Made by a program: the position numbers and the translations under genes
Sequence record: OP310984.1
DNA: 64,000 nucleotides
Reading direction: 5' to 3' (one strand)
The notes under the pieces: model-generated
What the model was told of the DNA's origin: nothing
Seen by the model: the letters and a program-made list of their open reading frames with translations, nothing else
Databases searched by the model: none
Shown here: positions 4,796-56,233 of the stretch, piece after piece
Numbering within the stretch: the stretch's first letter is position 1
Layout of the letters: each line of letters opens with the position of its first letter

Positions 4796-4813
4796 GCCTC
4801 CCCGAAGGGAGGC
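4796..4813 (-). terminator. UUCG-loop hairpin terminator after thyA
   Basis: gcctccc-TTCG-gggaggc-tttattt on minus strand. Confidence 0.8.
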
Positions 4814-16262: not shown

Positions 16263-16290
16263 GTGCAATAGCCCTCCCCGAAGGGAGGGC
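16246..16290. repeat. 45-bp exact direct repeat, copy 2 (includes UUCG hairpin 16271-16290)
   Basis: Identical to 806-850. Confidence 0.95.
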
Positions 16291-22344: not shown

Positions 22345-22374
22345 ATAAACCCTCCTACTAAGAGGAGGGTTTAT
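22345..22374 (-). terminator. intrinsic terminator
   Basis: 12-bp stem ataaaccctcct/aggagggtttat. Confidence 0.75.
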
Positions 22375-24430: not shown

Positions 24431-24607
24431 TTAATTATTAAAAGATAAATCATAATCACTTTGTCTGCGATTCGGATTAACAGGATCAGGATATTTTCCA
24501 GTTTTGATAACTTCTTTTATAGCTCTAAAATCACGTTCTAGAAAATCTAGTTTTTTAACTAACTCTTTTTCTAATTCTTTATTGAGTAGTCTTCTTAATT
24601 TGCTCAT
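24431..24607 (-). CDS. small hypothetical protein (58 aa, MSKLRRLLNKELEKELVKKLDFLERDF...)
   Basis: Manual translation; own ATG overlapping the 3' end of 24579..24974. Confidence 0.65.
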   Translation of the reverse strand: MSKLRRLLNKELEKELVKKLDFLERDFRAIKEVIKTGKYPDPVNPNRRQSDYDLSFNN

Positions 24608-24974
24608 CTACGTATACTCTTACAATGAACCAATTGATTAGGCCAAAACCTTTTGGTGTGATGGTAATGTCATCTTTATATCCATTTTTAGTGATTACAT
24701 TACGTAATACTTTAATTGCTTCAGGTGGAATAAGATTAGCATTACCGGTAACACTATACTCGAAATAATAACCTACACCTGGTAAATAACCTGATGCAAT
24801 CTGGTTAGTACCTGTGATATTACTAACGTGTTGGAAGTCACTAAAAGCATTCTTGTAGAATAACAAAATATTAGGAATTACTTCATCCCTAATAGTAGAA
24901 CTAGTAATGGCATCCGCCGATGGAAAATAAGGTACTAATTCATCTGTTACATTGGTGCTATTAATATCGGACAT
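24579..24974 (-). CDS. hypothetical early protein
   Basis: 131-aa ORF; GAGGA RBS; first gene after early promoter. Confidence 0.8.
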   Translation of the reverse strand: MSDINSTNVTDELVPYFPSADAITSSTIRDEVIPNILLFYKNAFSDFQHVSNITGTNQIASGYLPGVGYYFEYSVTGNANLIPPEAIKVLRNVITKNGYKDDITITPKGFGLINWFIVRVYVDEQIKKTTQ

Positions 24975-25020
24975 AATCTTTTCCTCATTATAAAAGGATA
25001 AATATCTTTATGGTAATCCT

Positions 25021-25050
25021 GTAATATAGATTTAAATTAATTTATAATGA
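25021..25050 (-). promoter_or_regulatory. early promoter
   Basis: TATATTAC on minus strand (25021-25028). Confidence 0.75.
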
Positions 25051-25056
25051 ATGGCA

Positions 25057-25083
25057 TAAAGGAGCCCCTGGTGGGCTCCTTTA
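25057..25083. terminator. symmetrical hairpin (bidirectional terminator or 5' boundary of the adjacent RNA)
   Basis: taaaggagccc-ctggt-gggctccttta 11-bp stem. Confidence 0.65.
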
Positions 25084-25089
25084 ATGTAA

Positions 25090-25266
25090 TAGGTCCGACC
25101 CCTATCTAGAGGTCGGTGAGTAGCAAGGCACCGTAGTTGGGGTTCGTGTCGTTCCTGACGATACTTTAGTACCCCGGTTTATTTACGACTGGATCACCCC
25201 CTTAAAGTGCAGTGCGTTTTACGCAAACTGCCTTGCTCTATATCATTGCACTGTGCGTATTTTTAT
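25090..25266 (+). ncRNA. putative structured RNA resembling the 3' end of bacterial 16S rRNA (h44 end/h45/anti-SD)
   Basis: GC-rich intergenic island; blocks 25120-25136 and 25184-25205 match the 16S 3' consensus at 15/18 and 19/22; nested stems; ends in a T-rich tract. Transcription not shown. Confidence 0.65.
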
Positions 25267-25324
25267 TCGTTAGCTAATCTTATGACTTAGAGTTATATTT
25301 ACATACCCCTTAAGGAAAAATGCA

Positions 25325-27436
25325 ATGATAGACTCATTTAGGAAGCTAATGGGCTCGCTATCAATTACTGAAACTGATCAAGAAATTATCATCAGTGGTT
25401 TTGATGGTGCTGCATTCATTAGAGATATTAACAAGTATTGGCGAACCACTAAATTAGCTACGCAGTTATTTAACACGGTTAGTCGTCGTAGTATTTCATT
25501 TTATAAATTCTTTGCTCCTGAAATATATTACATGCTAGAAGCAGTAAAGAATTATAGAAGTAGATACATCTCTATTAAAACTGTTAATGCCATCCGTGAA
25601 GCAATGCTTCAATATACCTGGTTAAAAAATACTCGTCCTGTAGATACCAACTCTGTACCAGGTAGACTCAATTTCAAGATGTTAGACAAATTGACATTTA
25701 CACCAGATGAGTCTCAAAAAGCTTATTTTGAAAATTATAATTATCGAATTGACCAGTATGGTTTACGTGGTGATATTGTTGCAGGTAAACCTGGTACTGG
25801 TAAGACATTCATGACGATGGCTATTGCTGAAATGGTTGAGTCGGATATCATTATAGTTGTTTGTGAAAAGAAGTCTATTGATCTAATATGGAAGCCATCT
25901 ATTATTGAGATGTATAAGGAAAGACAAAAAGTATGGTCGACCATTGATGATAAAGCCTACAACGGTCAAAGAATACTTATATCCCATTACCAGGCGCAAG
26001 ATAAAATAATTGATCTATTAAGAAGCGGTATATTCAAAGGTAAGAACATTACGGTGATTCTGGATGAATCACACAATATGAACGATCCTAATTCTGCACA
26101 ATCTCTTAAGTTCCAGCAAATATGTTTTATGTCTAACTCTAATAACAGATTATTAGCGTCAGGTACCCCTGTTAAAGCACTTGGTTCTGAATTAGTAAGT
26201 GCATTAAGAGTATTAGACGATCTCTTCACCAATGAGGTTGAAGAACGTTTTAAGAAAGCATTTGGAAAAGAGACACAGAAAGGATTAGATATTGTCCAAC
26301 ATCGCTTTGGGTTAATTGCGTACGTCATTGAAAAGAAAGATACTGAGGTTTTACCACCGAGGATAAAAGCGTATCGTATCAAGATACCAAATGGATCACA
26401 GTATACTCTTAATGCCATTAAACGTGATTGTGAAGCTTTTATTAGAGAACGTGTAAAGTTCTATGCTGCGCGCCGACCAGAAGATGAGAAGTATTGGGCT
26501 AAACTAATGGCGATACACGAGAACTCTCTTAAGACCCAGGCGCAGAAAGATGGTTTCGCTCGTTATAAGAATTTGATTAAAATAATTCAGAAGAATCAAG
26601 ACCCGCGATACATTGGTGAAGAAATTAAAGAATCTAACCAATATGAAAAAATGTTTATAGAGCCAACTTTACCTCGTAATGAAATAGCTGCTTTTAGAGA
26701 TATTAAATCAGTTATAAAATACGTTATGCTAAAGATACAAGGTGAATGTTTGGGAAGGGTTTTAGGTGCTAAACGCATTCAGTGCCATGTGGACATGGTA
26801 CCGTATATTGACTGGGTTGGTATCACTGAATCAACTATGAAGAAAACGATTGCATTTACATCGTTTGTTGAGGTTGTTGATACTGTTGATAAGTACACCA
26901 ATAAATTAGGTATGCATCCGGCGGTGGTGTATGGTAAAACCAATGACAATTTACCTCAAATAATCAGTAGATTTGAGAAAGACCCTAAATTAAATCCATT
27001 GGTAGCTACATATGCTTCCCTTTCAACAGCGGTCCGTATGACGATGGCTGATACTATGGTGACAATTAATTCACCGTTTAGGCATTACATTCTAGAACAA
27101 GCTATTGCTCGAATTTACCGTAAAGGTCAGGATTCACAAACAGTCGTATATCAATGTACTCTCGATACAGAAGATGAACCGAATATCTCAACAAGGTCAG
27201 ATGACATTCTAAAATGGAGTCAGGCAATGGTTGAAGCTATTATGGGTATTAAATCTCCATTTGAGATCACAGAGTCATTAGAAAGTTATGTTGATAAAAA
27301 TAATAATTTTGATGAAAATAAAATCATTTATCAGATGCTAAAAGAATCATTTGAGAAGTATGATATCGCAATTGATTTTAATGACTTTGATACACGTATG
27401 TATAAACCATATCAGCCCGCATATATGCGGTTTTAA
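25325..27436 (+). CDS. superfamily 2 (SNF2/DEAD-like) helicase, phiKZ gp203-like
   Basis: Walker A GKPGTGKT, Walker B ILDESHN, motif III ASGTP, motif VI QAIARIYRKGQ; TAAGGA RBS. Confidence 0.92.
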   Translation: MIDSFRKLMGSLSITETDQEIIISGFDGAAFIRDINKYWRTTKLATQLFNTVSRRSISFYKFFAPEIYYMLEAVKNYRSRYISIKTVNAIREAMLQYTWLKNTRPVDTNSVPGRLNFKMLDKLTFTPDESQKAYFENYNYRIDQYGLRGDIVAGKPGTGKTFMTMAIAEMVESDIIIVVCEKKSIDLIWKPSIIEMYKERQKVWSTIDDKAYNGQRILISHYQAQDKIIDLLRSGIFKGKNITVILDESHNMNDPNSAQSLKFQQICFMSNSNNRLLASGTPVKALGSELVSALRVLDDLFTNEVEERFKKAFGKETQKGLDIVQHRFGLIAYVIEKKDTEVLPPRIKAYRIKIPNGSQYTLNAIKRDCEAFIRERVKFYAARRPEDEKYWAKLMAIHENSLKTQAQKDGFARYKNLIKIIQKNQDPRYIGEEIKESNQYEKMFIEPTLPRNEIAAFRDIKSVIKYVMLKIQGECLGRVLGAKRIQCHVDMVPYIDWVGITESTMKKTIAFTSFVEVVDTVDKYTNKLGMHPAVVYGKTNDNLPQIISRFEKDPKLNPLVATYASLSTAVRMTMADTMVTINSPFRHYILEQAIARIYRKGQDSQTVVYQCTLDTEDEPNISTRSDDILKWSQAMVEAIMGIKSPFEITESLESYVDKNNNFDENKIIYQMLKESFEKYDIAIDFNDFDTRMYKPYQPAYMRF

Positions 27437-48779: not shown

Positions 48780-50246
48780 ATGAAGAAGGCATTAGTTCCT
48801 TTTAATATTTCTTTACTTATTCCTACTAAAGAACAATTAAAGTTCTTAGGTCAAGTAAAGAGTCATGAGATATTTGAAGGTTTAGGTGGTAACTTTCATG
48901 AAGATGGTTTGTTCTCTGTTTCCATTTTTGGAAGGGTTGGATCAACTGATCGTGAGAGTTTATTTGGATATATCCATTTAGGTTTAGAACTTATCCATCC
49001 AGCTGTATATCGAAACTTAATTAAATTAAAAGCTTTCTATGAAGAAATTATTCTTGGTAAGGCATTTGCAGTATTTGACGAATCTATTAAAGATTTTATC
49101 CGCGCTGATGAACTAACTGGTAAAACTGGTTATACATTCTTTTTTGATAACTGGAAACGAATTGACTTTGGATCCACTAAGTCAGGGATTCGGCTATCAA
49201 GGTTACAATTAGTCGAAAAATATAAAGATAACTGTATTTTTAAAGACATGCTTGTAACACCAGCCGCTTATCGTGATGCAGAGATTGATGAGAATAATCG
49301 TGTTGAGATGGATGAGATCAATGAACACTATAGGTATCTATTAAATCAGTCGTTTGGTGTACCTGATAGCTTTGGACCAAATGATGACTTGAGTATCTAT
49401 GATCGCAAACGAGTAGCAATGCAAAACACCGTATTAGCTATTTATGAACATTATGAACGACTGCTATCCGGTAAACGTGGATACATTCAATCTAAATGGG
49501 CATCCCGTCGTATTGCCAATGGTACACGTAACGTCATTAGTTCGCTAGATACTAATGCTGCTGATCTTGATTCACCTAATCGACCAACATTCAAAGATGC
49601 CGTAGTTGGCTTATATCAAGCAGCTCGTTCAGTTGCACCGCGTACAATCTTTGCACTAAGGCAAGGTGTAGTTGGTGAAGTGTTTGATACAGTTACTAAC
49701 ACTGTACAGCTCATCAATAAGAAAACACTACGTTTAGAATGGGTCGATATCTCTAACGAAGATATGGATTTATGGGGAACTCCTGAAGGGCAAGAACAAA
49801 TCATCAATGAGTTAGATGTCATTGAAAAACGTTCACGTGCAATTGAAATTGCTGATCATTATCTAGCCCTTATTTACGTTGATGATAAACAGAATTTTAA
49901 AATATTCCGCAACATCGATGAGTTACCTACTAATCTAAATAAGAAATTTGTTAGACCTATTACTTATGCCGAATTAGTTTACCTTAGTGGATTAAGTATG
50001 TGGCGAACAAACTCAGCGTTTGTTACACGATATCCTGTAGAAAACTACAATAGCTCTATCCCCTGTAAGATGTATGTTAAAACAACCGTAGTGGGTGAAT
50101 TACGTTATCCGTTAAATGATCAATGGGAACGTGATGATACGTTGGAACCAGCCTTAGAATTCCCTGTGTTTGAATTAAATAAACCAGCCCAGTGGCATGA
50201 CTCAGTATCCATCTCTCCTTCTATTCTCGCGCCATTGGGGGCGGAT
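48780..50246 (+). CDS. virion RNA polymerase beta' subunit (gp180-like), exon 1
   Basis: GLFSVSIFG, GYIHL, KRGYIQ...GTRNVIS; ends LAPLGAD at the catalytic motif. Confidence 0.93.
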
Positions 50247-51689
50247 TAATTGTAATACTGTATATCTAGTTATCCTATAGGAAATAAATAGGATAACAAC
50301 CATGTTAAAAAAATTCATTGAAAATCCAGGATTTAAAAAGATACCACATACTGGTGGCATGTATGAAATCAGCTGTAGTGGTATCGCTAGAGAAAGTATA
50401 AGTAAACGCGTACTGACCACAATGGTTAGTGATGAAGGCGAACATCTTTTTCCTGAACATACAACAGGTGAATGGTTTGACGGTTTGTCACTATCTGTTG
50501 TATTAGGTGTTACGTATAGAAACTGCATATTACCAATGCGGTTACTACATAAACTACGCGTTATTTACAAAGACGGTAATAAAAGTAATCATCGCCTAAC
50601 CAATTTTATTTGGGCGTGTCCTGAAGGTGAACTTACTCATCCATTAATAAAAGAATACTGCTATATTCCCGGATATAGTAGATACATGATTAATCGCGCT
50701 GGACAAGTACTTAGCACTGTTAACAGTAATCATCTCTCACCATACATGAATGAAGATGGTTATCTGATGTATGGTGTTCAGCCGGATGTAGGTAAACGTA
50801 CAATTGTAGGAATGCACCGTCTTCTTAGTCTAGCTTTCTTAAAATATCCAGGTAATGTTGATTCACTTGATGTGAATCATTTAAATGCAATTAAAGATTG
50901 TAATGATTTAACAAACCTTGAATGGGCTACCCGTAAAAGAAATTGCGAGCATGCGCACATCAATGGACTTCATAATTCCAAAGCAGTTTTGGTCAGAGAC
51001 CTTATAACTACCAATATAACTCGTTATTACAGCATAGAACAATGCGCCCGAGAAATTGGTATAGATGGTGAAACTTTAAGATTACGTTTAACTAAAAATA
51101 GTAATCTTGTTTACAATCAATCATTACAGTTTAAATACGAAGATGATGATACACCATGGAATAATGATAATCTCGTGTATGTGGAAACTCATCGCAGAAT
51201 TCATATTGAATCATTAGAATCTGAAGCTGTATTAATAAAAAACTCACTGAAGGAAGCCGCCGAGTTTTTCAATGTCACACCAGGTTGCTTAGGTTATCAT
51301 CTAAGGAAATCTGAACATGGTTGTATTTTTAGAAATTATGCAGTAAAGTACATAAGTCCACATATTCCGAAATGAATATGTTTTACTCTTCTAATTGCTG
51401 GAAACTCTCGTTAGACTAATCAACTACAGCATAACTGGAAACAGTAAGTGCGAATGTTTGAAAATGATTAGGTAGAGACAATCAGCAGCGAAGCCGCTAA
51501 ATTACTTAACTGTAATATGTGGAACGTTCAACGACTAGGGGGTTGCGCCCCGTAGGATCAAGTGATCCGAAATGGAGAGCACCTAAACAGATGATGCTGT
51601 AGGTGAAGATATAGTCTGGTCTTCTAGTGAGAGCTAGAGCTGCACGTAATGGTGCGAATAGAGTTTAACGCACTCTATTGAACATAACG
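50247..51689 (+). mobile_element. group I self-splicing intron with homing endonuclease
   Basis: 5' exon ends in U, intron ends in G; P AATTGCTGGAAAC 51393, Q AATCAGCAG 51480, R GTTCAACGACTAG 51526, S AAGATATAGTCT 51606; P7 GACTA/TAGTC; splicing restores AD-FDGD. Confidence 0.95.
50302..51375 (+). CDS. intron-encoded HNH homing endonuclease (NUMOD4-like + HNH + HTH repeats), gp179-like
   Basis: IPGYSRYMINRAG, MHRLL..AF, DVNHLNAIKDCNDLTNLEW, YYSIEQCAREIG, SLKEAAEFF. Confidence 0.92.
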   Translation: MLKKFIENPGFKKIPHTGGMYEISCSGIARESISKRVLTTMVSDEGEHLFPEHTTGEWFDGLSLSVVLGVTYRNCILPMRLLHKLRVIYKDGNKSNHRLTNFIWACPEGELTHPLIKEYCYIPGYSRYMINRAGQVLSTVNSNHLSPYMNEDGYLMYGVQPDVGKRTIVGMHRLLSLAFLKYPGNVDSLDVNHLNAIKDCNDLTNLEWATRKRNCEHAHINGLHNSKAVLVRDLITTNITRYYSIEQCAREIGIDGETLRLRLTKNSNLVYNQSLQFKYEDDDTPWNNDNLVYVETHRRIHIESLESEAVLIKNSLKEAAEFFNVTPGCLGYHLRKSEHGCIFRNYAVKYISPHIPK

Positions 51690-51875
51690 TTCGACGGGGA
51701 CACTGTATCATTTAACGCAGTTTATTCAGAGGAAGCTATCGCTGAAACAGATGCTTTCTTTAAGAAACGTATTGCATATATACATGCCGATGGTCGACTG
51801 GCATTTAGTGTTGGTGTCCATACACTCAATTTAACTCTTCGGTACATGACTGGGGAACCCAAACAAAGGGATTAA
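51690..51875 (+). CDS. virion RNA polymerase beta' subunit, exon 2
   Basis: Begins TTC GAC GGG GAC (FDGD) immediately after the terminal G of the intron. Confidence 0.93.
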   Translation, partial: FDGDTVSFNAVYSEEAIAETDAFFKKRIAYIHADGRLAFSVGVHTLNLTLRYMTGEPKQRD

Positions 51876-51877
51876 TC

Positions 51878-54800
51878 ATGCGCTTAAATATTACACAGTT
51901 TCTGAAAAATTATAGTGTACGCGAATATGCTAAACTTCAGTCACCTAAGTTGCATGCTCTAAATAAACTTGATCTACCTTTCGAATCCATTTATCAGTTC
52001 TTCGATGGTAATAATGCAGTAATGGGTCCTAGTCAAACAGACCCATTATTCTCCAAACATCAAGGTAAAGTATATATTGAGCATGTTACTGATATGCTTA
52101 CATTTGAAGGTAATCCACGTAGGACTTCAAATATCCCAGCAACAATGATTCAAGAGTTTCGCCGCCAGAACCGTTTCTTTAAACCTTTACGCAGTGATAC
52201 CGGTTTTAAATTATCAAACCAGAACATTCTGGTAATGAATTATAATTTAATTAACCCTCAATGGAATTATATGGCTTCTTATAAAGCTACATGGTTCCGT
52301 TGGTCAAATGACATGCGTACATTCTGGAGTGGCGTAGCGGCTGCATGTGAACGTTTTCCTGGTTGGAACCAGTTCATTGATGTACACTTACCTGAGTTAG
52401 TTCCACCTCCTTCTTCTTTTAATAAACTACGAGGGGGTTTGACTCAAGATCTAGCTAATCAATTCAATACACCTGATATTCTAAATATATTTGATTTAGT
52501 TCGTTGGGTTTCTGATGATCGTGAAAGTTCTTTCATGAATGTCATCGATGCTAAGTATTACGGTAACATTAATCTTTTATTCCGTGTACAAAGTTCATTC
52601 TTTGTTATTAACTTAGGGATGCTTGATCAATGGCGTCGTGATCCAGAAATTAAAGATGATAAAGGTTATGATACCCAGCAAATAGCTAGGCGCCTTATTT
52701 CACTAGTATCAGCGATGGTTGAATATAACCAAGGTAATACTTCATTAATTAAAGAAGATACGCCTATCTTTAATGAAGATATTATTGTTGATGAAGAAAC
52801 TCCGGTTAGTTATGAAGAAGGTGAAGCAGAAGAGGTTGAGGATGTTGAGTCTAATAACGTTGAAGAAGAAGTAACTGAAGTTGATGTTATTGATGATGTT
52901 CAATTTGACCCAACCAACTTAACTAACTTAATTGATATTGGCGCAATTGAGGTAACATATACCCCACCACCAGAAAGTGATCTTGAGGTAACAAAGCTTA
53001 TCATTGAAAAAGATCCACTGGAATCTTCACCTTCTCGCCAAATTAAAGAAGAGAAGGAACTCATTGTAACAGATGTACCAGAAGATGAGTTATTCATCAA
53101 TACTGAAGTTGATGAAGAAGATAAACTAATCGATGCCATTAGAGCTAAAGCATACGACATGTATCGCGTGAATATGATTTCTGCGAATACATTCGAGCAA
53201 GCTCAAGAAGATTCGATTATGTATCGTCGTCTACCTGATCCATTTACCGATCCTAATGATGAATCAGTAGAACCTATGACGATCGCTGAGGCGATGGAAT
53301 ATCATCCAGATGATCTTAAGATTCCAGAAGACACCACTTTTGAAGATAAGCCAACCATTGTTGATAAATCAATGTTGGGTAGTAAGTTAAAAGCCATCCA
53401 ACGCAAATACAACAAGGTCTTATTAAAGAAAGATATTTTAAACAGTGTGTTATCTGTTCAGAAACAAGGCGTATCAGTAACTAATTACAAAATTGAAACT
53501 GTACGCGATTCTGGTAACCATTACCAAATCCACAAAGTTACATTAAAGCCTATTCGTGGTAGAAGTTCACAAGTAATGTTCCGTATCCCTGTCATTGATA
53601 ATGACGGTAGGTTCATGTCTAATGGGGTAACATATCGCCAACGTTTACAACGTGCTGATATTCCAATTCGTAAAGTTAATCCACGTAAAGTTGCATTGAC
53701 CTCTTATTATAATAAGACCTTTGTGACCAGATCTGAACGTGCTGAAAACAACTTTGATAATTGGTTAATCAGAGCGATTACCAACCGTGCATTAGATGGA
53801 AGTGATATGTCTGTACATTCAGTTACCTATGCTGAATTAGATCAATCCAACTATGTTCTACCAAGGGTGTACACTACTTTAGGAACAGCTTTTAAAGGCT
53901 TCCATAATCACCGTAATGTGTTCTATTTTAATTTCAAAGATCGTAATGAATTCTTTGCAAAACAAGGATTACATATCGAAGATTATGAAACTGATGATTT
54001 GATAATGGTGGGGTTCAATGGCACTGATGCTATCTTGTTAGATAAGAATTCCATCTTTTACATGAAAACAGGTAATGAGCTAGAACCTATTGGTACCATT
54101 ACAGATATACTTGGCTTAGATCTAACCAAAGCGCCGTTAGAAGCTATTCTAATGTCAATTGGTGGTAAAGAGCTACCATTAGGTTTCATTTTAGCATATC
54201 ACCATGGCTTAAACAATCTACTTAAGAAGTTGAATGTTAATTATCAGCGTCATCAGCGTGGTACCAGGATTGTTGTCAATAGTACGGATTATACATTAGC
54301 GTTCGCTGATGAGATCCTAGTATTTGATCGAGCTGATTATAAAGCAATGCTTGTATTAAGTGGACTCAAACGTTATCATAAATCACTGCGGCGTTATTCT
54401 GTTTATGATTTCAATAAACGAGATGTTTACTTCAGGGTTCTTGAAGAAGCTGGATTAAGTAATAGATTTACACGTGATATTGATACACTCTTCTCAGCAT
54501 GGGTCGATCCAATCACTGAGGGTCTACTCAAGGAGATGGGTGAACCAACTACTTTTGAAGGATTGCTTTATCGGTCTGTCGAGTTATTAACGAACGACTG
54601 GAGTCCAGCAGAAGTAGATGGCGCATATATGCGCTATCGTGGTTATGAGCGCATGGCAGGGGCTATTTTTAATGAACTCAATAGAGCGGTACGTGTATTT
54701 AATATGCGTAATGGTGGGTCAGTGCAAACTGTCGAGTTAGATCCACACGTGATCTGGCGCAAGATTGTACAAGATCCGACAGTAGCCACTATTGAAGATT

Positions 54801-56233
54801 CTAACCCCATTGCAAATATCCGTGAACAAGAAGCGATGACTTATCGTGGAGATGGTGGACGCGGTCCAACTTCAATGGTTGCACGTACACGTATTTACGG
54901 TGAAGCGGATGTTGGTGTGGTTAGTGAATCAACTGTGGACTCAGGTGACGTTGGTGTTATTGCTTACTTAGTACCTGATGCTAACTTTGTAAACATGCGT
55001 GGTGTTACGCGTATGTTTGATCCAAAGACAGATGGGCCAGCTAGACTACTCTCAACTAGTGCACTGCTTGGTGTTGCAACCGAACATGATGACCCTAAGC
55101 GAATTAACTTTATCTCAATTCAGCAGCAGCAAGGTATTTATGCTGATGGGTATACAGTTACACCAGTTCGTACAGGCTATGAACAAATCATAGCCCAAAG
55201 GACTAGTTCTATCTTTGCTGTAGCAGCAGAACAAGATGGTGAGGTTGTAGCTATTGATGAATATGGTATCCAAGTTAAATATGCCGATGGTAATGTATTT
55301 GGATATCAATTAGGTACAGTTCATGGCACAGCAGCTGGTGTTAACTATCCACACATTCTTGTTACCTCATTAAAGAAAGGTGATAAGTTTAAACGTGGAG
55401 ATACTATCACATATAACAAACGTTATTTCTCTGAAGATAGGTATACGCCTGGGCAAGTATTATGGAAAGCCGGTTGTATGGCTGTTGTAGCATTTGATGA
55501 TAACCTTGACACTTTAGAAGACGGTTCAGTTATTTCTGAAGACCTAGCTAAAAGGTTAAATACTCAAACAACTGCAATCAAGAATATCGATGTTAGGTTT
55601 GATCAGACTATTCGAGATATGGTGAAAGTTGGGGATCATGTCGACTTAAATTCAATTCTATGTATAATTGAAGATCCTGAAACAGCTGCTCACTCACTAT
55701 ATGACGAGGCATCTATTGAGACATTACGCAAACTATCAGCATATTCGCCACGTGCTAAGCTCGTAGGTACAGTATCAAAGATTGAATGCTTCTATCATGG
55801 TGAAATAGACGATATGACACCAAGTTTACAAGCATTAGCTAATACGTCAGATAAACAACGCGCTGAACGAGCTAAATCATTGAAAGAACCTACTTTCACT
55901 GGACAAGTAGATGCTAACTATCGAGTGAAAGGACGAGCCTTAGAATATGACCACATGATTATTCGAGTGTATATCGATCATGATATCCCATGTGGTGTTG
56001 GAGATAAAGGCGTAGTAGCTAACCAGATGAAAACGGTATTCTCCCGTGTAATGACTGGACGTAATGAAACTGAAGATGGCCGTAATATTGATCTACTATT
56101 CGGTAATACATCGGTAGAAGAACGAATGGTTCTATCTCCTAAAATCATTGCTACAACAACTGGTATCTTGTGGGCAGCTGGAAAACATCTTGTAGCTGTA
56201 TATAGAGGAAACACTAATGCAAAAGCTAAGTAA
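51878..56233 (+). CDS. virion RNA polymerase beta subunit, phiKZ gp178-like
   Basis: 1451 aa; GRFMSNG, DSNP, GDGGR, QQQQ, LEDGSVISE, GVGDKGVVANQMKTV. Confidence 0.93.
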   Translation: MRLNITQFLKNYSVREYAKLQSPKLHALNKLDLPFESIYQFFDGNNAVMGPSQTDPLFSKHQGKVYIEHVTDMLTFEGNPRRTSNIPATMIQEFRRQNRFFKPLRSDTGFKLSNQNILVMNYNLINPQWNYMASYKATWFRWSNDMRTFWSGVAAACERFPGWNQFIDVHLPELVPPPSSFNKLRGGLTQDLANQFNTPDILNIFDLVRWVSDDRESSFMNVIDAKYYGNINLLFRVQSSFFVINLGMLDQWRRDPEIKDDKGYDTQQIARRLISLVSAMVEYNQGNTSLIKEDTPIFNEDIIVDEETPVSYEEGEAEEVEDVESNNVEEEVTEVDVIDDVQFDPTNLTNLIDIGAIEVTYTPPPESDLEVTKLIIEKDPLESSPSRQIKEEKELIVTDVPEDELFINTEVDEEDKLIDAIRAKAYDMYRVNMISANTFEQAQEDSIMYRRLPDPFTDPNDESVEPMTIAEAMEYHPDDLKIPEDTTFEDKPTIVDKSMLGSKLKAIQRKYNKVLLKKDILNSVLSVQKQGVSVTNYKIETVRDSGNHYQIHKVTLKPIRGRSSQVMFRIPVIDNDGRFMSNGVTYRQRLQRADIPIRKVNPRKVALTSYYNKTFVTRSERAENNFDNWLIRAITNRALDGSDMSVHSVTYAELDQSNYVLPRVYTTLGTAFKGFHNHRNVFYFNFKDRNEFFAKQGLHIEDYETDDLIMVGFNGTDAILLDKNSIFYMKTGNELEPIGTITDILGLDLTKAPLEAILMSIGGKELPLGFILAYHHGLNNLLKKLNVNYQRHQRGTRIVVNSTDYTLAFADEILVFDRADYKAMLVLSGLKRYHKSLRRYSVYDFNKRDVYFRVLEEAGLSNRFTRDIDTLFSAWVDPITEGLLKEMGEPTTFEGLLYRSVELLTNDWSPAEVDGAYMRYRGYERMAGAIFNELNRAVRVFNMRNGGSVQTVELDPHVIWRKIVQDPTVATIEDSNPIANIREQEAMTYRGDGGRGPTSMVARTRIYGEADVGVVSESTVDSGDVGVIAYLVPDANFVNMRGVTRMFDPKTDGPARLLSTSALLGVATEHDDPKRINFISIQQQQGIYADGYTVTPVRTGYEQIIAQRTSSIFAVAAEQDGEVVAIDEYGIQVKYADGNVFGYQLGTVHGTAAGVNYPHILVTSLKKGDKFKRGDTITYNKRYFSEDRYTPGQVLWKAGCMAVVAFDDNLDTLEDGSVISEDLAKRLNTQTTAIKNIDVRFDQTIRDMVKVGDHVDLNSILCIIEDPETAAHSLYDEASIETLRKLSAYSPRAKLVGTVSKIECFYHGEIDDMTPSLQALANTSDKQRAERAKSLKEPTFTGQVDANYRVKGRALEYDHMIIRVYIDHDIPCGVGDKGVVANQMKTVFSRVMTGRNETEDGRNIDLLFGNTSVEERMVLSPKIIATTTGILWAAGKHLVAVYRGNTNAKAK

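Follow-up and report, generated by a model that had tools for sequence, protein, structure and literature searches.

The window analysed here, a whole 64-kb stretch of DNA from record OP310984 ('Wadjak 2'), belongs to a phiKZ-type phage genome of Pseudomonas aeruginosa with 99.9% identity to phiKZ, and it holds a GC-rich island inside a 350-bp gap between the genes PHIKZ204 and PHIKZ203. Our analysis predicts that this island is the gene for a non-coding RNA of about 186 nucleotides (nt), which lies on the window minus strand just upstream of PHIKZ204 (phiKZ record NC_004629, + strand, ~212,854-213,039; window position x corresponds to NC_004629 position 238,092 - x on the opposite strand). 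The predicted RNA carries an invariant complement of the 3' tail of 16S ribosomal RNA (rRNA), and we lean modestly towards a trans-acting non-coding RNA that would pair with the anti-Shine-Dalgarno (anti-SD) tail of host 30S subunits and damp or re-direct Shine-Dalgarno (SD)-dependent initiation.

The original prediction for this DNA had described the island as a structured RNA element whose core is related to the 16S 3' tail and the anti-SD, and this much is borne out. With an annotated Acinetobacter rRNA gene as the 16S reference, the segment 25184-25205 (its block 2) matches the 16S 3' end at 19 of 22 positions, and the 17-mer at 25189-25205 at 16 of 17. Chance had been considered a poor explanation, and we agree: with wobble pairs allowed, the island can pair with the 18-nt 16S tail over 18 nt, whereas no other site on either strand of the 64-kb window exceeds 10 nt. 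What did not survive is the implied + strand, as all strand-sensitive evidence points to the minus strand. A minus-strand transcript bears the complement of the 16S tail and would therefore pair with 16S rRNA rather than imitate it. This leaves the proposed + strand mimic of the 16S 3' end, a decoy titrating Era, KsgA, bS21 or rRNA-cutting toxins, without support.

No feature is annotated in the gap between PHIKZ204 and PHIKZ203 in any of the database records, and the gap contains no open reading frame (ORF) of at least 40 amino acids. The Rfam 15 covariance models gave nothing beyond chance level on the gap (E>3), the Rfam model of bacterial small-subunit (SSU) rRNA found no match at E<=10 on either strand of positions 24950-25350, and ARAGORN detected no tRNA or tmRNA across the window.

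Conservation among Pseudomonas jumbo phages

Distant BLASTN matches show that the island is conserved outside the phiKZ-type phages, in PhiPA3, PS119XW, 201phi2-1 and Phabio. Pattern scans, a hidden Markov model, two covariance models and 80 IMG/VR loci centred on the helicase brought in D6, Psa21, Noxifer and a large number of uncultivated relatives. The family comprises at least 26 distinct sequences from Pseudomonas-infecting, nucleus-forming jumbo phages and uncultivated relatives, covering Phikzvirus, Miltoncavirus, Pawinskivirus, Serwervirus, Phabiovirus, Noxifervirus, D6/Psa21-type phages and IMG/VR contigs. The homologue search by BLASTN and covariance models that had been suggested at the outset hence reveals conservation across several phage genera, and the 16S-related core is conserved with it, the 12-mer GGATCACC[C/T]CCT being invariant across all homologues.

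Nearly all homologues lie within 1 kb of an SNF2 helicase gene, and the local gene order varies between genera. PhiPA3 has the element in inverted orientation to its helicase gene, and in 201phi2-1 it stands 1.5 kb away with four opposite-strand genes between. Both arrangements contradict a 5' leader of the helicase gene PHIKZ203. The regulatory leader that had been offered as an option fails in this cis form for a further reason: the conserved late-type promoter sequence AATCTTATGAC lies between the island and the helicase start codon, so that the island precedes the presumed promoter of the helicase gene.

In Chimalliviridae at a greater distance (Xanthomonas RTH11, Ralstonia RP12 and ~55 IMG/VR loci with 32-41% helicase identity), neither nhmmer nor the covariance models nor scans for the exact motif gave anything convincing around the helicase gene; in these phages the element may be absent or may lie elsewhere in the genome. 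The 16S-tail motif is also the sequence of the universal 16S reverse primer. Assembly artefact and primer contamination were nevertheless rejected, the motif being embedded in covarying sequence in dozens of independent genomes, with 47 phiKZ-type records.

A covarying fold

For the fold we specified a structure by hand and re-aligned 22 distinct sequences with covariance models R1 and R2. An earlier run of MAFFT and RNAalifold on 19 core sequences had recovered 7 pairs only, because the P2 arm was misaligned. In the structure alignment, five helical segments with 22 pairs have 92.1% of their cells paired, a figure that is somewhat flattering since the alignment was fitted to the model, and double-sided changes occur at 21 of the 22 pairs. 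None of 500 shuffles matched the observed values, and slid partners gave 33-45% paired cells. The variety of pair types per position is not easily explained other than by a conserved fold.

The unit is closed by helix P1, whose 5' strand AGCAAGGCA (25229-25237; minus strand, as for all parts of the RNA) pairs with 25122-25130. Its 3' strand UGCCUUGCU occupies 25122-25138 together with the junction AACUACGG, and covaries with the 5' strand. Compensatory changes are found in 6/6 modelled pairs (25229-25234 with 25125-25130), the three outer pairs lying outside the model. A closing helix AGCAAGGCA/TGCCTTGCT (25122-25130/25229-25237) had been predicted, and it is present and kept by compensatory changes in relatives. 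The same helix disposes of block 1, which had been read as 16S-like: block 1 is one half of P1, its 3' strand read on the opposite strand, and it covaries away from 16S, with variants such as ACAGGC/GCCTGT and GAAGAAGC/GCTTCTTC in relatives.

The GCA at the inner end of P1 could pair instead with UGC located just 3' of P3 (25229-25231 versus 25206-25212 / 25122-25124). This GCAG/CUGC alternative would give two mutually exclusive conformations in phiKZ, PhiPA3 and 201phi2-1 types; in L161, covariation (GGUA/UACC) favours P1 over the alternative pairing.

Within P1, the hairpin P3 (UGCG-UAAAA-CGCA, 25213-25225) shows double-sided changes at 3 of its 4 pairs. The complement of the 16S tail, 5'-UUAAGGGGGUGAUCCAGUCGUA-3' (25184-25205), forms an unpaired junction between P3 and P2, and no covarying intramolecular partner of this motif was found. 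The P2 arm (25139-25175) is built from an outer stem GGGGU/ACCCC, an internal loop UAA/GA, an apical stem and a loop CAGGA. Its helices 3-5 are 100%, 95% and 96% paired, with compensatory changes at every pair; this is the long hairpin already recognised in the original prediction, and such changes keep it in relatives. The CAGGA loop (25153-25157) replaces a GNRA tetraloop in phiKZ and SL2 alone. It presents GGA in a loop, the kind of motif bound by RsmA/CsrA proteins; a role as RsmA sponge was rejected, since the GGA loop is limited to these two phages.

The junction AACUACG (phiKZ 25131-25138, AACUACGG) is kept in most members. In ~18/28 members its CUACG(G) complements CCGUAG, the 5' strand of 16S helix 45, and in phiKZ it has UCGUA, on the 3' side of the motif, as a second possible partner; the changes seen in distant members do not preserve wobble pairing. 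An 'h45 stem' CGTAG/TTACG had been proposed here, and we find it unconserved, as PhiPA3 and other members lack it. A further hairpin, P4 (CCGACCUCU-AGAU-AGGGGUCGG, 25095-25117), is predicted to stand between P1 and the terminator. It contains the CCGACC/GGTCGG pairing noticed before, and a similar hairpin is predicted at the same place in relatives.

Complementarity to the 16S tail

The invariant segment of the minus strand reads 5'-(U)AAGGRGGUGAUCCAG(Y)C-3', a 'super Shine-Dalgarno'. We aligned 28 sequences with the 16S tail without shifting the register. Pairing with 16S holds at positions 3-16 in 28/28, except at position 16, where Phabio departs (27/28). Only two kinds of substitution occur in the paired run: A/G facing a U, with 12 G.U at the GGRGG centre and one more at position 15, and C/U facing a G, at position 17. 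Every substitution inside the run keeps a wobble pair, and the sites where a transition would break the pair never vary. Past position 18, complementarity is at the random level.

Contiguous runs span 14-21 nt and reach at least 16 nt in 25/28; in phiKZ, 18 nt of complementarity become 21 contiguous pairs with the wobble extension (3 G.U). The complement spans the anti-SD tail and the first bases of helix 45. The predicted duplex with 16S has -38 kcal/mol in phiKZ and -29 to -42 kcal/mol in homologues, as against -6 kcal/mol for the SD of the helicase gene. The SD pairings of 71 gene leaders in the window are 3-8 nt long (median 5), with a median of -5.8 kcal/mol. A change of CCUCC to CCCCC had been reported for the island; the RNA has a G there that forms a G.U wobble with the 16S U. 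The change is neutral for an antisense RNA and not for a mimic.

We found no start codon and no conserved ORF after the motif. At the position where the alpha-proteobacterial RNA rreB has its start codon, 7 nt after AGGAGG, the triplet is GCC, GUC or another non-start codon. Frames opening at the GUG inside the motif run from 4 to >25 codons without conservation of length, and third-codon positions of the motif are as invariant as all others.

Orientation and ends of the predicted transcript

The strand was assigned from six lines of evidence, among them the asymmetry between G.U and A.C combinations in the modelled helices. Over all pairs, the minus strand shows 35-40 G.U against 13-14 A.C. 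At positions flanked on both sides by Watson-Crick pairs the count is 13 G.U to 1 A.C, a bias that the choice of alignment is unable to create. The loops agree: the P2 apical loop is a GNRA tetraloop (GGGA, GAGA, GUGA, GCGA) on the minus strand in ~23/27 members and UYNC on the plus strand, and the P3 loop on the minus strand is UUCG in two members (L102 and L191) and GUAA in PhiPA3. In 201phi2-1, P4 contains a G.U on the minus strand that would be C.A on the other. The stems of the terminator give 10 G.U against 1 A.C for the minus strand, and the terminator loop is UUCG in 10/25. We conclude that the RNA gene lies on the window minus strand. A DNA-level signal, such as an origin or a protein site, was rejected because the G.U-specific covariation argues for RNA.

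The presumed 5' end agrees with this orientation. A TATAG box ATGATATAG (25238-25242) stands directly 5' of P1 and is kept in all homologues, in distant members as TATGTAC. Upstream of it, an A-rich tract followed by TAC(G) (CGAATAAAAATACG, 25256-25269) forms the upstream half of a candidate middle-class promoter of the non-virion RNA polymerase (nvRNAP), and A-rich sequence with TAC(T) recurs 14 nt 5' of TATAG in phiKZ/PhiPA3/201phi2-1/D6-type relatives; distant members have a TATG(T) motif. The phiKZ middle promoter has TACT centred 22 nt upstream of the transcription start site, with an A-rich repeat before it (Wicke 2020, PMC8244752). Applying the ~22-nt rule to the TAC places the predicted start at ~25238 (+/-2), the first base of P1. 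A middle-class phage promoter thus probably drives the RNA. On the plus strand, nothing promoter-like was found upstream of the island.

At the other end, an intrinsic terminator GGAGCCC-ACCAG-GGGCUCC followed by UUUAUGCC (25053-25079) predicts a 3' end at ~25053. It fits the general form of phiKZ terminators, a hairpin plus TTTAT(G). The U-rich tail is present on the minus strand in every homologue, and on the plus strand as well only in phiKZ and SL2, whose terminator hairpin has symmetrical flanks. Window-wide, terminators take the form ATAAA, GC hairpin (often with a UUCG-type loop), TTTAT(G), for example at 1278-1293, 4796-4813, 16271-16290 and 22350-22369; many are symmetric and could work in both directions. 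For 201phi2-1, ONT-cappable-seq (ONT, Oxford Nanopore Technologies) reported a strong terminator with a transcription termination site (TTS) at 229,201 (PMC11512511). The homologous hairpin lies at 229,176-229,193, so that the published TTS falls 8 nt past it, on the corresponding strand. This TTS, in 201phi2-1 only, is the experimentally mapped terminus of the RNA, and the phiKZ ends are predicted from motifs.

The same 17-mer, UAAGGAGGUGAUCCAGC, occurs in Amme-3 and XD2, two ~96-kb Pseudomonas phages unrelated to phiKZ. There it sits inside a tRNA array, between tRNA-Arg and tRNA-Asn on the tRNA strand (Amme-3 L241 ~600-770 and XD2 L240 ~590-780, both +), and this co-orientation agrees with the minus-strand assignment. 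A covarying GNRA-capped hairpin precedes the 17-mer, and covariance model R2 matches the two elements weakly (E 0.01-0.03). They may represent a second, possibly related, family of 16S-tail-complementary phage RNAs.

Genomic surroundings

The gap is flanked by PHIKZ204 (24579-24974, minus strand) and by PHIKZ203 (25325-27436, plus strand), which encodes a virion-associated SNF2/DEAD helicase; its start codon is at 25325 by the RefSeq phiKZ coordinates and at 25349 by OP310984. Outside the RNA, beyond its terminator, an early-promoter-like sequence TCTATATTAC (25020-25029, minus strand), read from the sequence against the early-promoter consensus, would serve PHIKZ204; GTAATATAG is likewise present in D6, L032, Phabio, L162, L165 and L166. 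On the other side, also outside the RNA, AATCTTATGAC (25276-25286, plus strand) would serve the helicase gene. It is kept 5' of the helicase in phiKZ, SL2, D6, L032, L161, L162, L163, L165 and Psa21, occurs as a variant in PS119XW and is located across the inverted locus in PhiPA3. Judged by the TATG motif of late promoters, it looks like the TATG-type late promoter of this virion-protein gene.

The helicase gene is ~3.1 kb long, or aligns in two pieces, in PhiPA3-, PS119XW- and SL2-type phages, as against 2.1 kb in phiKZ. The loci concerned are L002 1-1316 (PhiPA3), L003 1700-3194 (PS119XW) and matches in SL2/BRkr/PA1C. The longer gene suggests an inserted intein or intron in these lineages. 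Elsewhere in the window, a group I intron (Rfam RF00028, 90 bits; core 51317-51639, plus strand) lies within 48780-56233. The intron and an HNH endonuclease ORF (50302-51375) interrupt the gene for the virion RNA polymerase beta subunit (48780-50249 / 51878-56233).

Proposed mode of action and alternatives

In the mechanism that we favour, the motif would base-pair with the 16S 3' tail on free host 30S subunits, in a duplex that would be far more stable than that of any mRNA SD. The complex of RNA and 30S subunit would be unable to initiate, and hence non-productive, because no start codon follows. The RNA would in this way occupy and mask the anti-SD, and SD-dependent initiation would be damped or re-directed during the middle and late phases. 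More broadly, and tentatively, it is possible that nucleus-forming Pseudomonas jumbo phages, perhaps together with the ~96-kb group, seize the anti-SD tail by a dedicated non-coding RNA, re-programming initiation or docking cargo.

Several observations weigh against the proposed masking. The phiKZ transcript is predicted from sequence motifs, and we infer its binding to the 30S subunit from complementarity. In thermodynamic folding, the predicted accessibility of the motif is just a little above that of the remaining RNA (~0.45 vs 0.37 probability of being unpaired), and pairing past ~nt 1530 of 16S requires opening the base of helix 45. As to orientation, the minimum free energy of the whole transcript favours the minus strand weakly (16/25 usable sequences, one of 26 having been mis-extracted; p=0.02), and one conserved A.C mismatch in the P2 arm would be a G.U on the opposite strand. 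Neither the accessibility nor the free-energy comparison carries weight in our reading. The genes of the window use ordinary SDs (median -5.8 vs -2.9 kcal/mol in random windows); phage genes being SD-dependent, a stoichiometric block of the anti-SD would harm the phage too. In addition, ribosomes vastly outnumber most small RNAs, so that a pure sponge would need very high expression, a point also raised by the authors who described rreB (PMC5711450). Finally, Grad-seq at 10 min reported two phage non-coding RNAs, both of them others.

The continued SD-dependence of phage genes would sit well with a ribosome-docking adaptor, in which 16S pairing anchors the P1/P2 scaffold with a bound phage or host protein on the 30S platform, or localises or stabilises the RNA; in one variant this would happen close to the phage nucleus, the place at which ribosomes first encounter exported mRNAs. 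The scaffold is indeed conserved beyond the needs of SD display (GNRA loop, UAA/GA internal loop, AACUACG junction), and phiKZ proteins are sent to host ribosomes (PMC10914614; review PMC13282480). However, no partner protein was identified, no co-varying neighbour gene is evident and gene order differs between genera, and we rate an adaptor as rather unlikely. Less probable still is a partner other than the mature 30S subunit, be it that pre-16S or free 16S maturation or helix 45 is disturbed, that an RNase III-type duplex removes the anti-SD, or that a protein binds. The complementarity often extends 4-9 nt into the helix 45 3' strand, phiKZ reaching 21 nt, and CUACG(G) complements the 5' strand of that helix in ~18 of 28 members. 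On the other hand, Phabio and the Noxifer group lose complementarity at position 14-16, so that the tail alone is covered in every member, and the CUACG changes in distant members break wobble pairing. An incidental complementarity is very unlikely, given 14 nt that complement the most conserved rRNA tail and are kept in ~28 lineages with wobble-neutral changes only.

Two further readings carry little weight. An rreB-like small mRNA, whose extended SD would drive low-level synthesis of a tiny peptide, with the function residing in this peptide or in translation as such, would share with rreB and rreR the 17-nt type of SD and a terminated transcript of ~165-190 nt. The non-start codons (GCC, GUC, others) at the rreB start position speak against it, as do the unconserved ORFs from the motif GUG (4 to >25 codons) with their equally invariant third positions. 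Slightly more remote is a + strand transcript that mimics the 16S 3' end (the end of helix 44, helix 45 and the anti-SD) and would act as a decoy, diverting maturation factors, ribosomal proteins or rRNA-cleaving toxins. It could draw on the 16/17 identity of block 2 and on 13-14 cells that are G.U on the + strand, including the A.C site of P2. Against this stand the interior G.U to A.C count of 13:1 and the terminator-stem count of 10:1, both for the opposite strand, and + strand loops that are UYNC and CGAA rather than GNRA and UUCG. The + strand has no upstream promoter, the conserved promoter of the helicase being downstream of the island, and PhiPA3 carries the locus in the opposite orientation to the helicase. 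Neither block 1 nor the h45-like stem is conserved, the SSU rRNA model has no match, and the CCCCC/CCUCC polymorphism would alter the specificity of a mimic, whereas it is neutral for antisense pairing. Thus, the + strand mimic is largely refuted in silico.

The means by which phiKZ-like phages give preference to their own mRNAs remain to be explained: the host genome is not degraded early, and a protein nucleus separates transcription from translation. Grad-seq showed that ribosomes give priority to phage mRNAs but offered no mechanism, and a conserved phage RNA with 14-21 nt of perfect complement to the anti-SD tail provides a concrete hypothesis. If pairing with the anti-SD tail is confirmed, the RNA would be the first known example of a trans-acting RNA that targets the mRNA-selection site of the ribosome through base pairing. 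It would also provide a functional context for 'super-SD' RNAs of the rreB/rreR type, add an RNA to the phage factors targeting ribosomes and supply a compact, portable 30S-binding module for synthetic biology. Even with a modest downstream effect, the family stands as a well-supported new class of structured RNA for Rfam.

Relation to known systems

The original prediction knew of no description of such an element, and the literature that could be searched contains none, with no account of this family or of its 16S complementarity in the phiKZ and 201phi2-1 transcriptome papers. Published phiKZ non-coding RNA candidates are 3'UTR_PHIKZ298 (UTR, untranslated region), 5'UTR_p40 and the gp182-leader small RNA (sRNA), the last being conserved in 201phi2-1, EL and PhiPA3 (PMC8545117, PMC10914365, PMC11512511). 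They are likewise short, structured, terminator-bounded, located upstream of genes and conserved among jumbo phages, but they come from different loci and none was reported with 16S complementarity. The RNA described here may correspond to one of the 17 unnamed '5'UTR-derived' phiKZ candidates or of the 3 intergenic 201phi2-1 sRNAs; it would look '5'UTR-derived' because it lies upstream of PHIKZ204.

Among phage factors that act on translation, phage-encoded bS21 or bS1 homologues act on the anti-SD region. PHIKZ014 is a ribosome-binding protein of phiKZ (PMC10914614). These factors are aimed at host translation initiation as well, but they are proteins and not a base-pairing RNA. An ordinary SD shares with the phage element both the pairing partner, CCUCC in the 16S tail, and the GGAGG or GGGGG core; in the window it pairs over a median of 5 nt with -5.8 kcal/mol, whereas the phage element pairs over 18-21 nt with -38 kcal/mol and precedes no gene.

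Among RNAs carrying such a segment, experiments exist only for rreB and rreR, which are in our assessment the closest known relatives of the phage RNA. They are alpha-proteobacterial small mRNAs of ~165 nt, independently terminated, and their hallmark is a 16-17-nt complement of the whole single-stranded 16S 3' end (Hahn et al. 2016, RNA Biol, PMC5711450). rreB, with a 17-nt SD, co-sediments with the 30S subunit, and its extended SD leads to strong 30S association and suppressed translation; the physiological role of both RNAs is unknown (PMC5711450). The phage RNA resembles them in its contiguous complement of at least 16 nt to the 16S 3' end in 25/28 members. In contrast, the rre genes are cellular and have a conserved 14-18-codon ORF with GUG at the end of the complementary region, while the phage RNA comes from lytic jumbo phages, has no start codon there and no conserved ORF, and builds a larger covarying scaffold. 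Outside the motif no homology was seen, with no dedicated comparison made. We therefore place it outside the rreB/rreR family, as it lacks the small ORF and no resemblance beyond the motif was seen. Taken together, the phage RNA most likely works in the manner of the rreB/rreR extended-SD RNAs, and not as a 16S mimic, a helicase leader or a member of an Rfam family.

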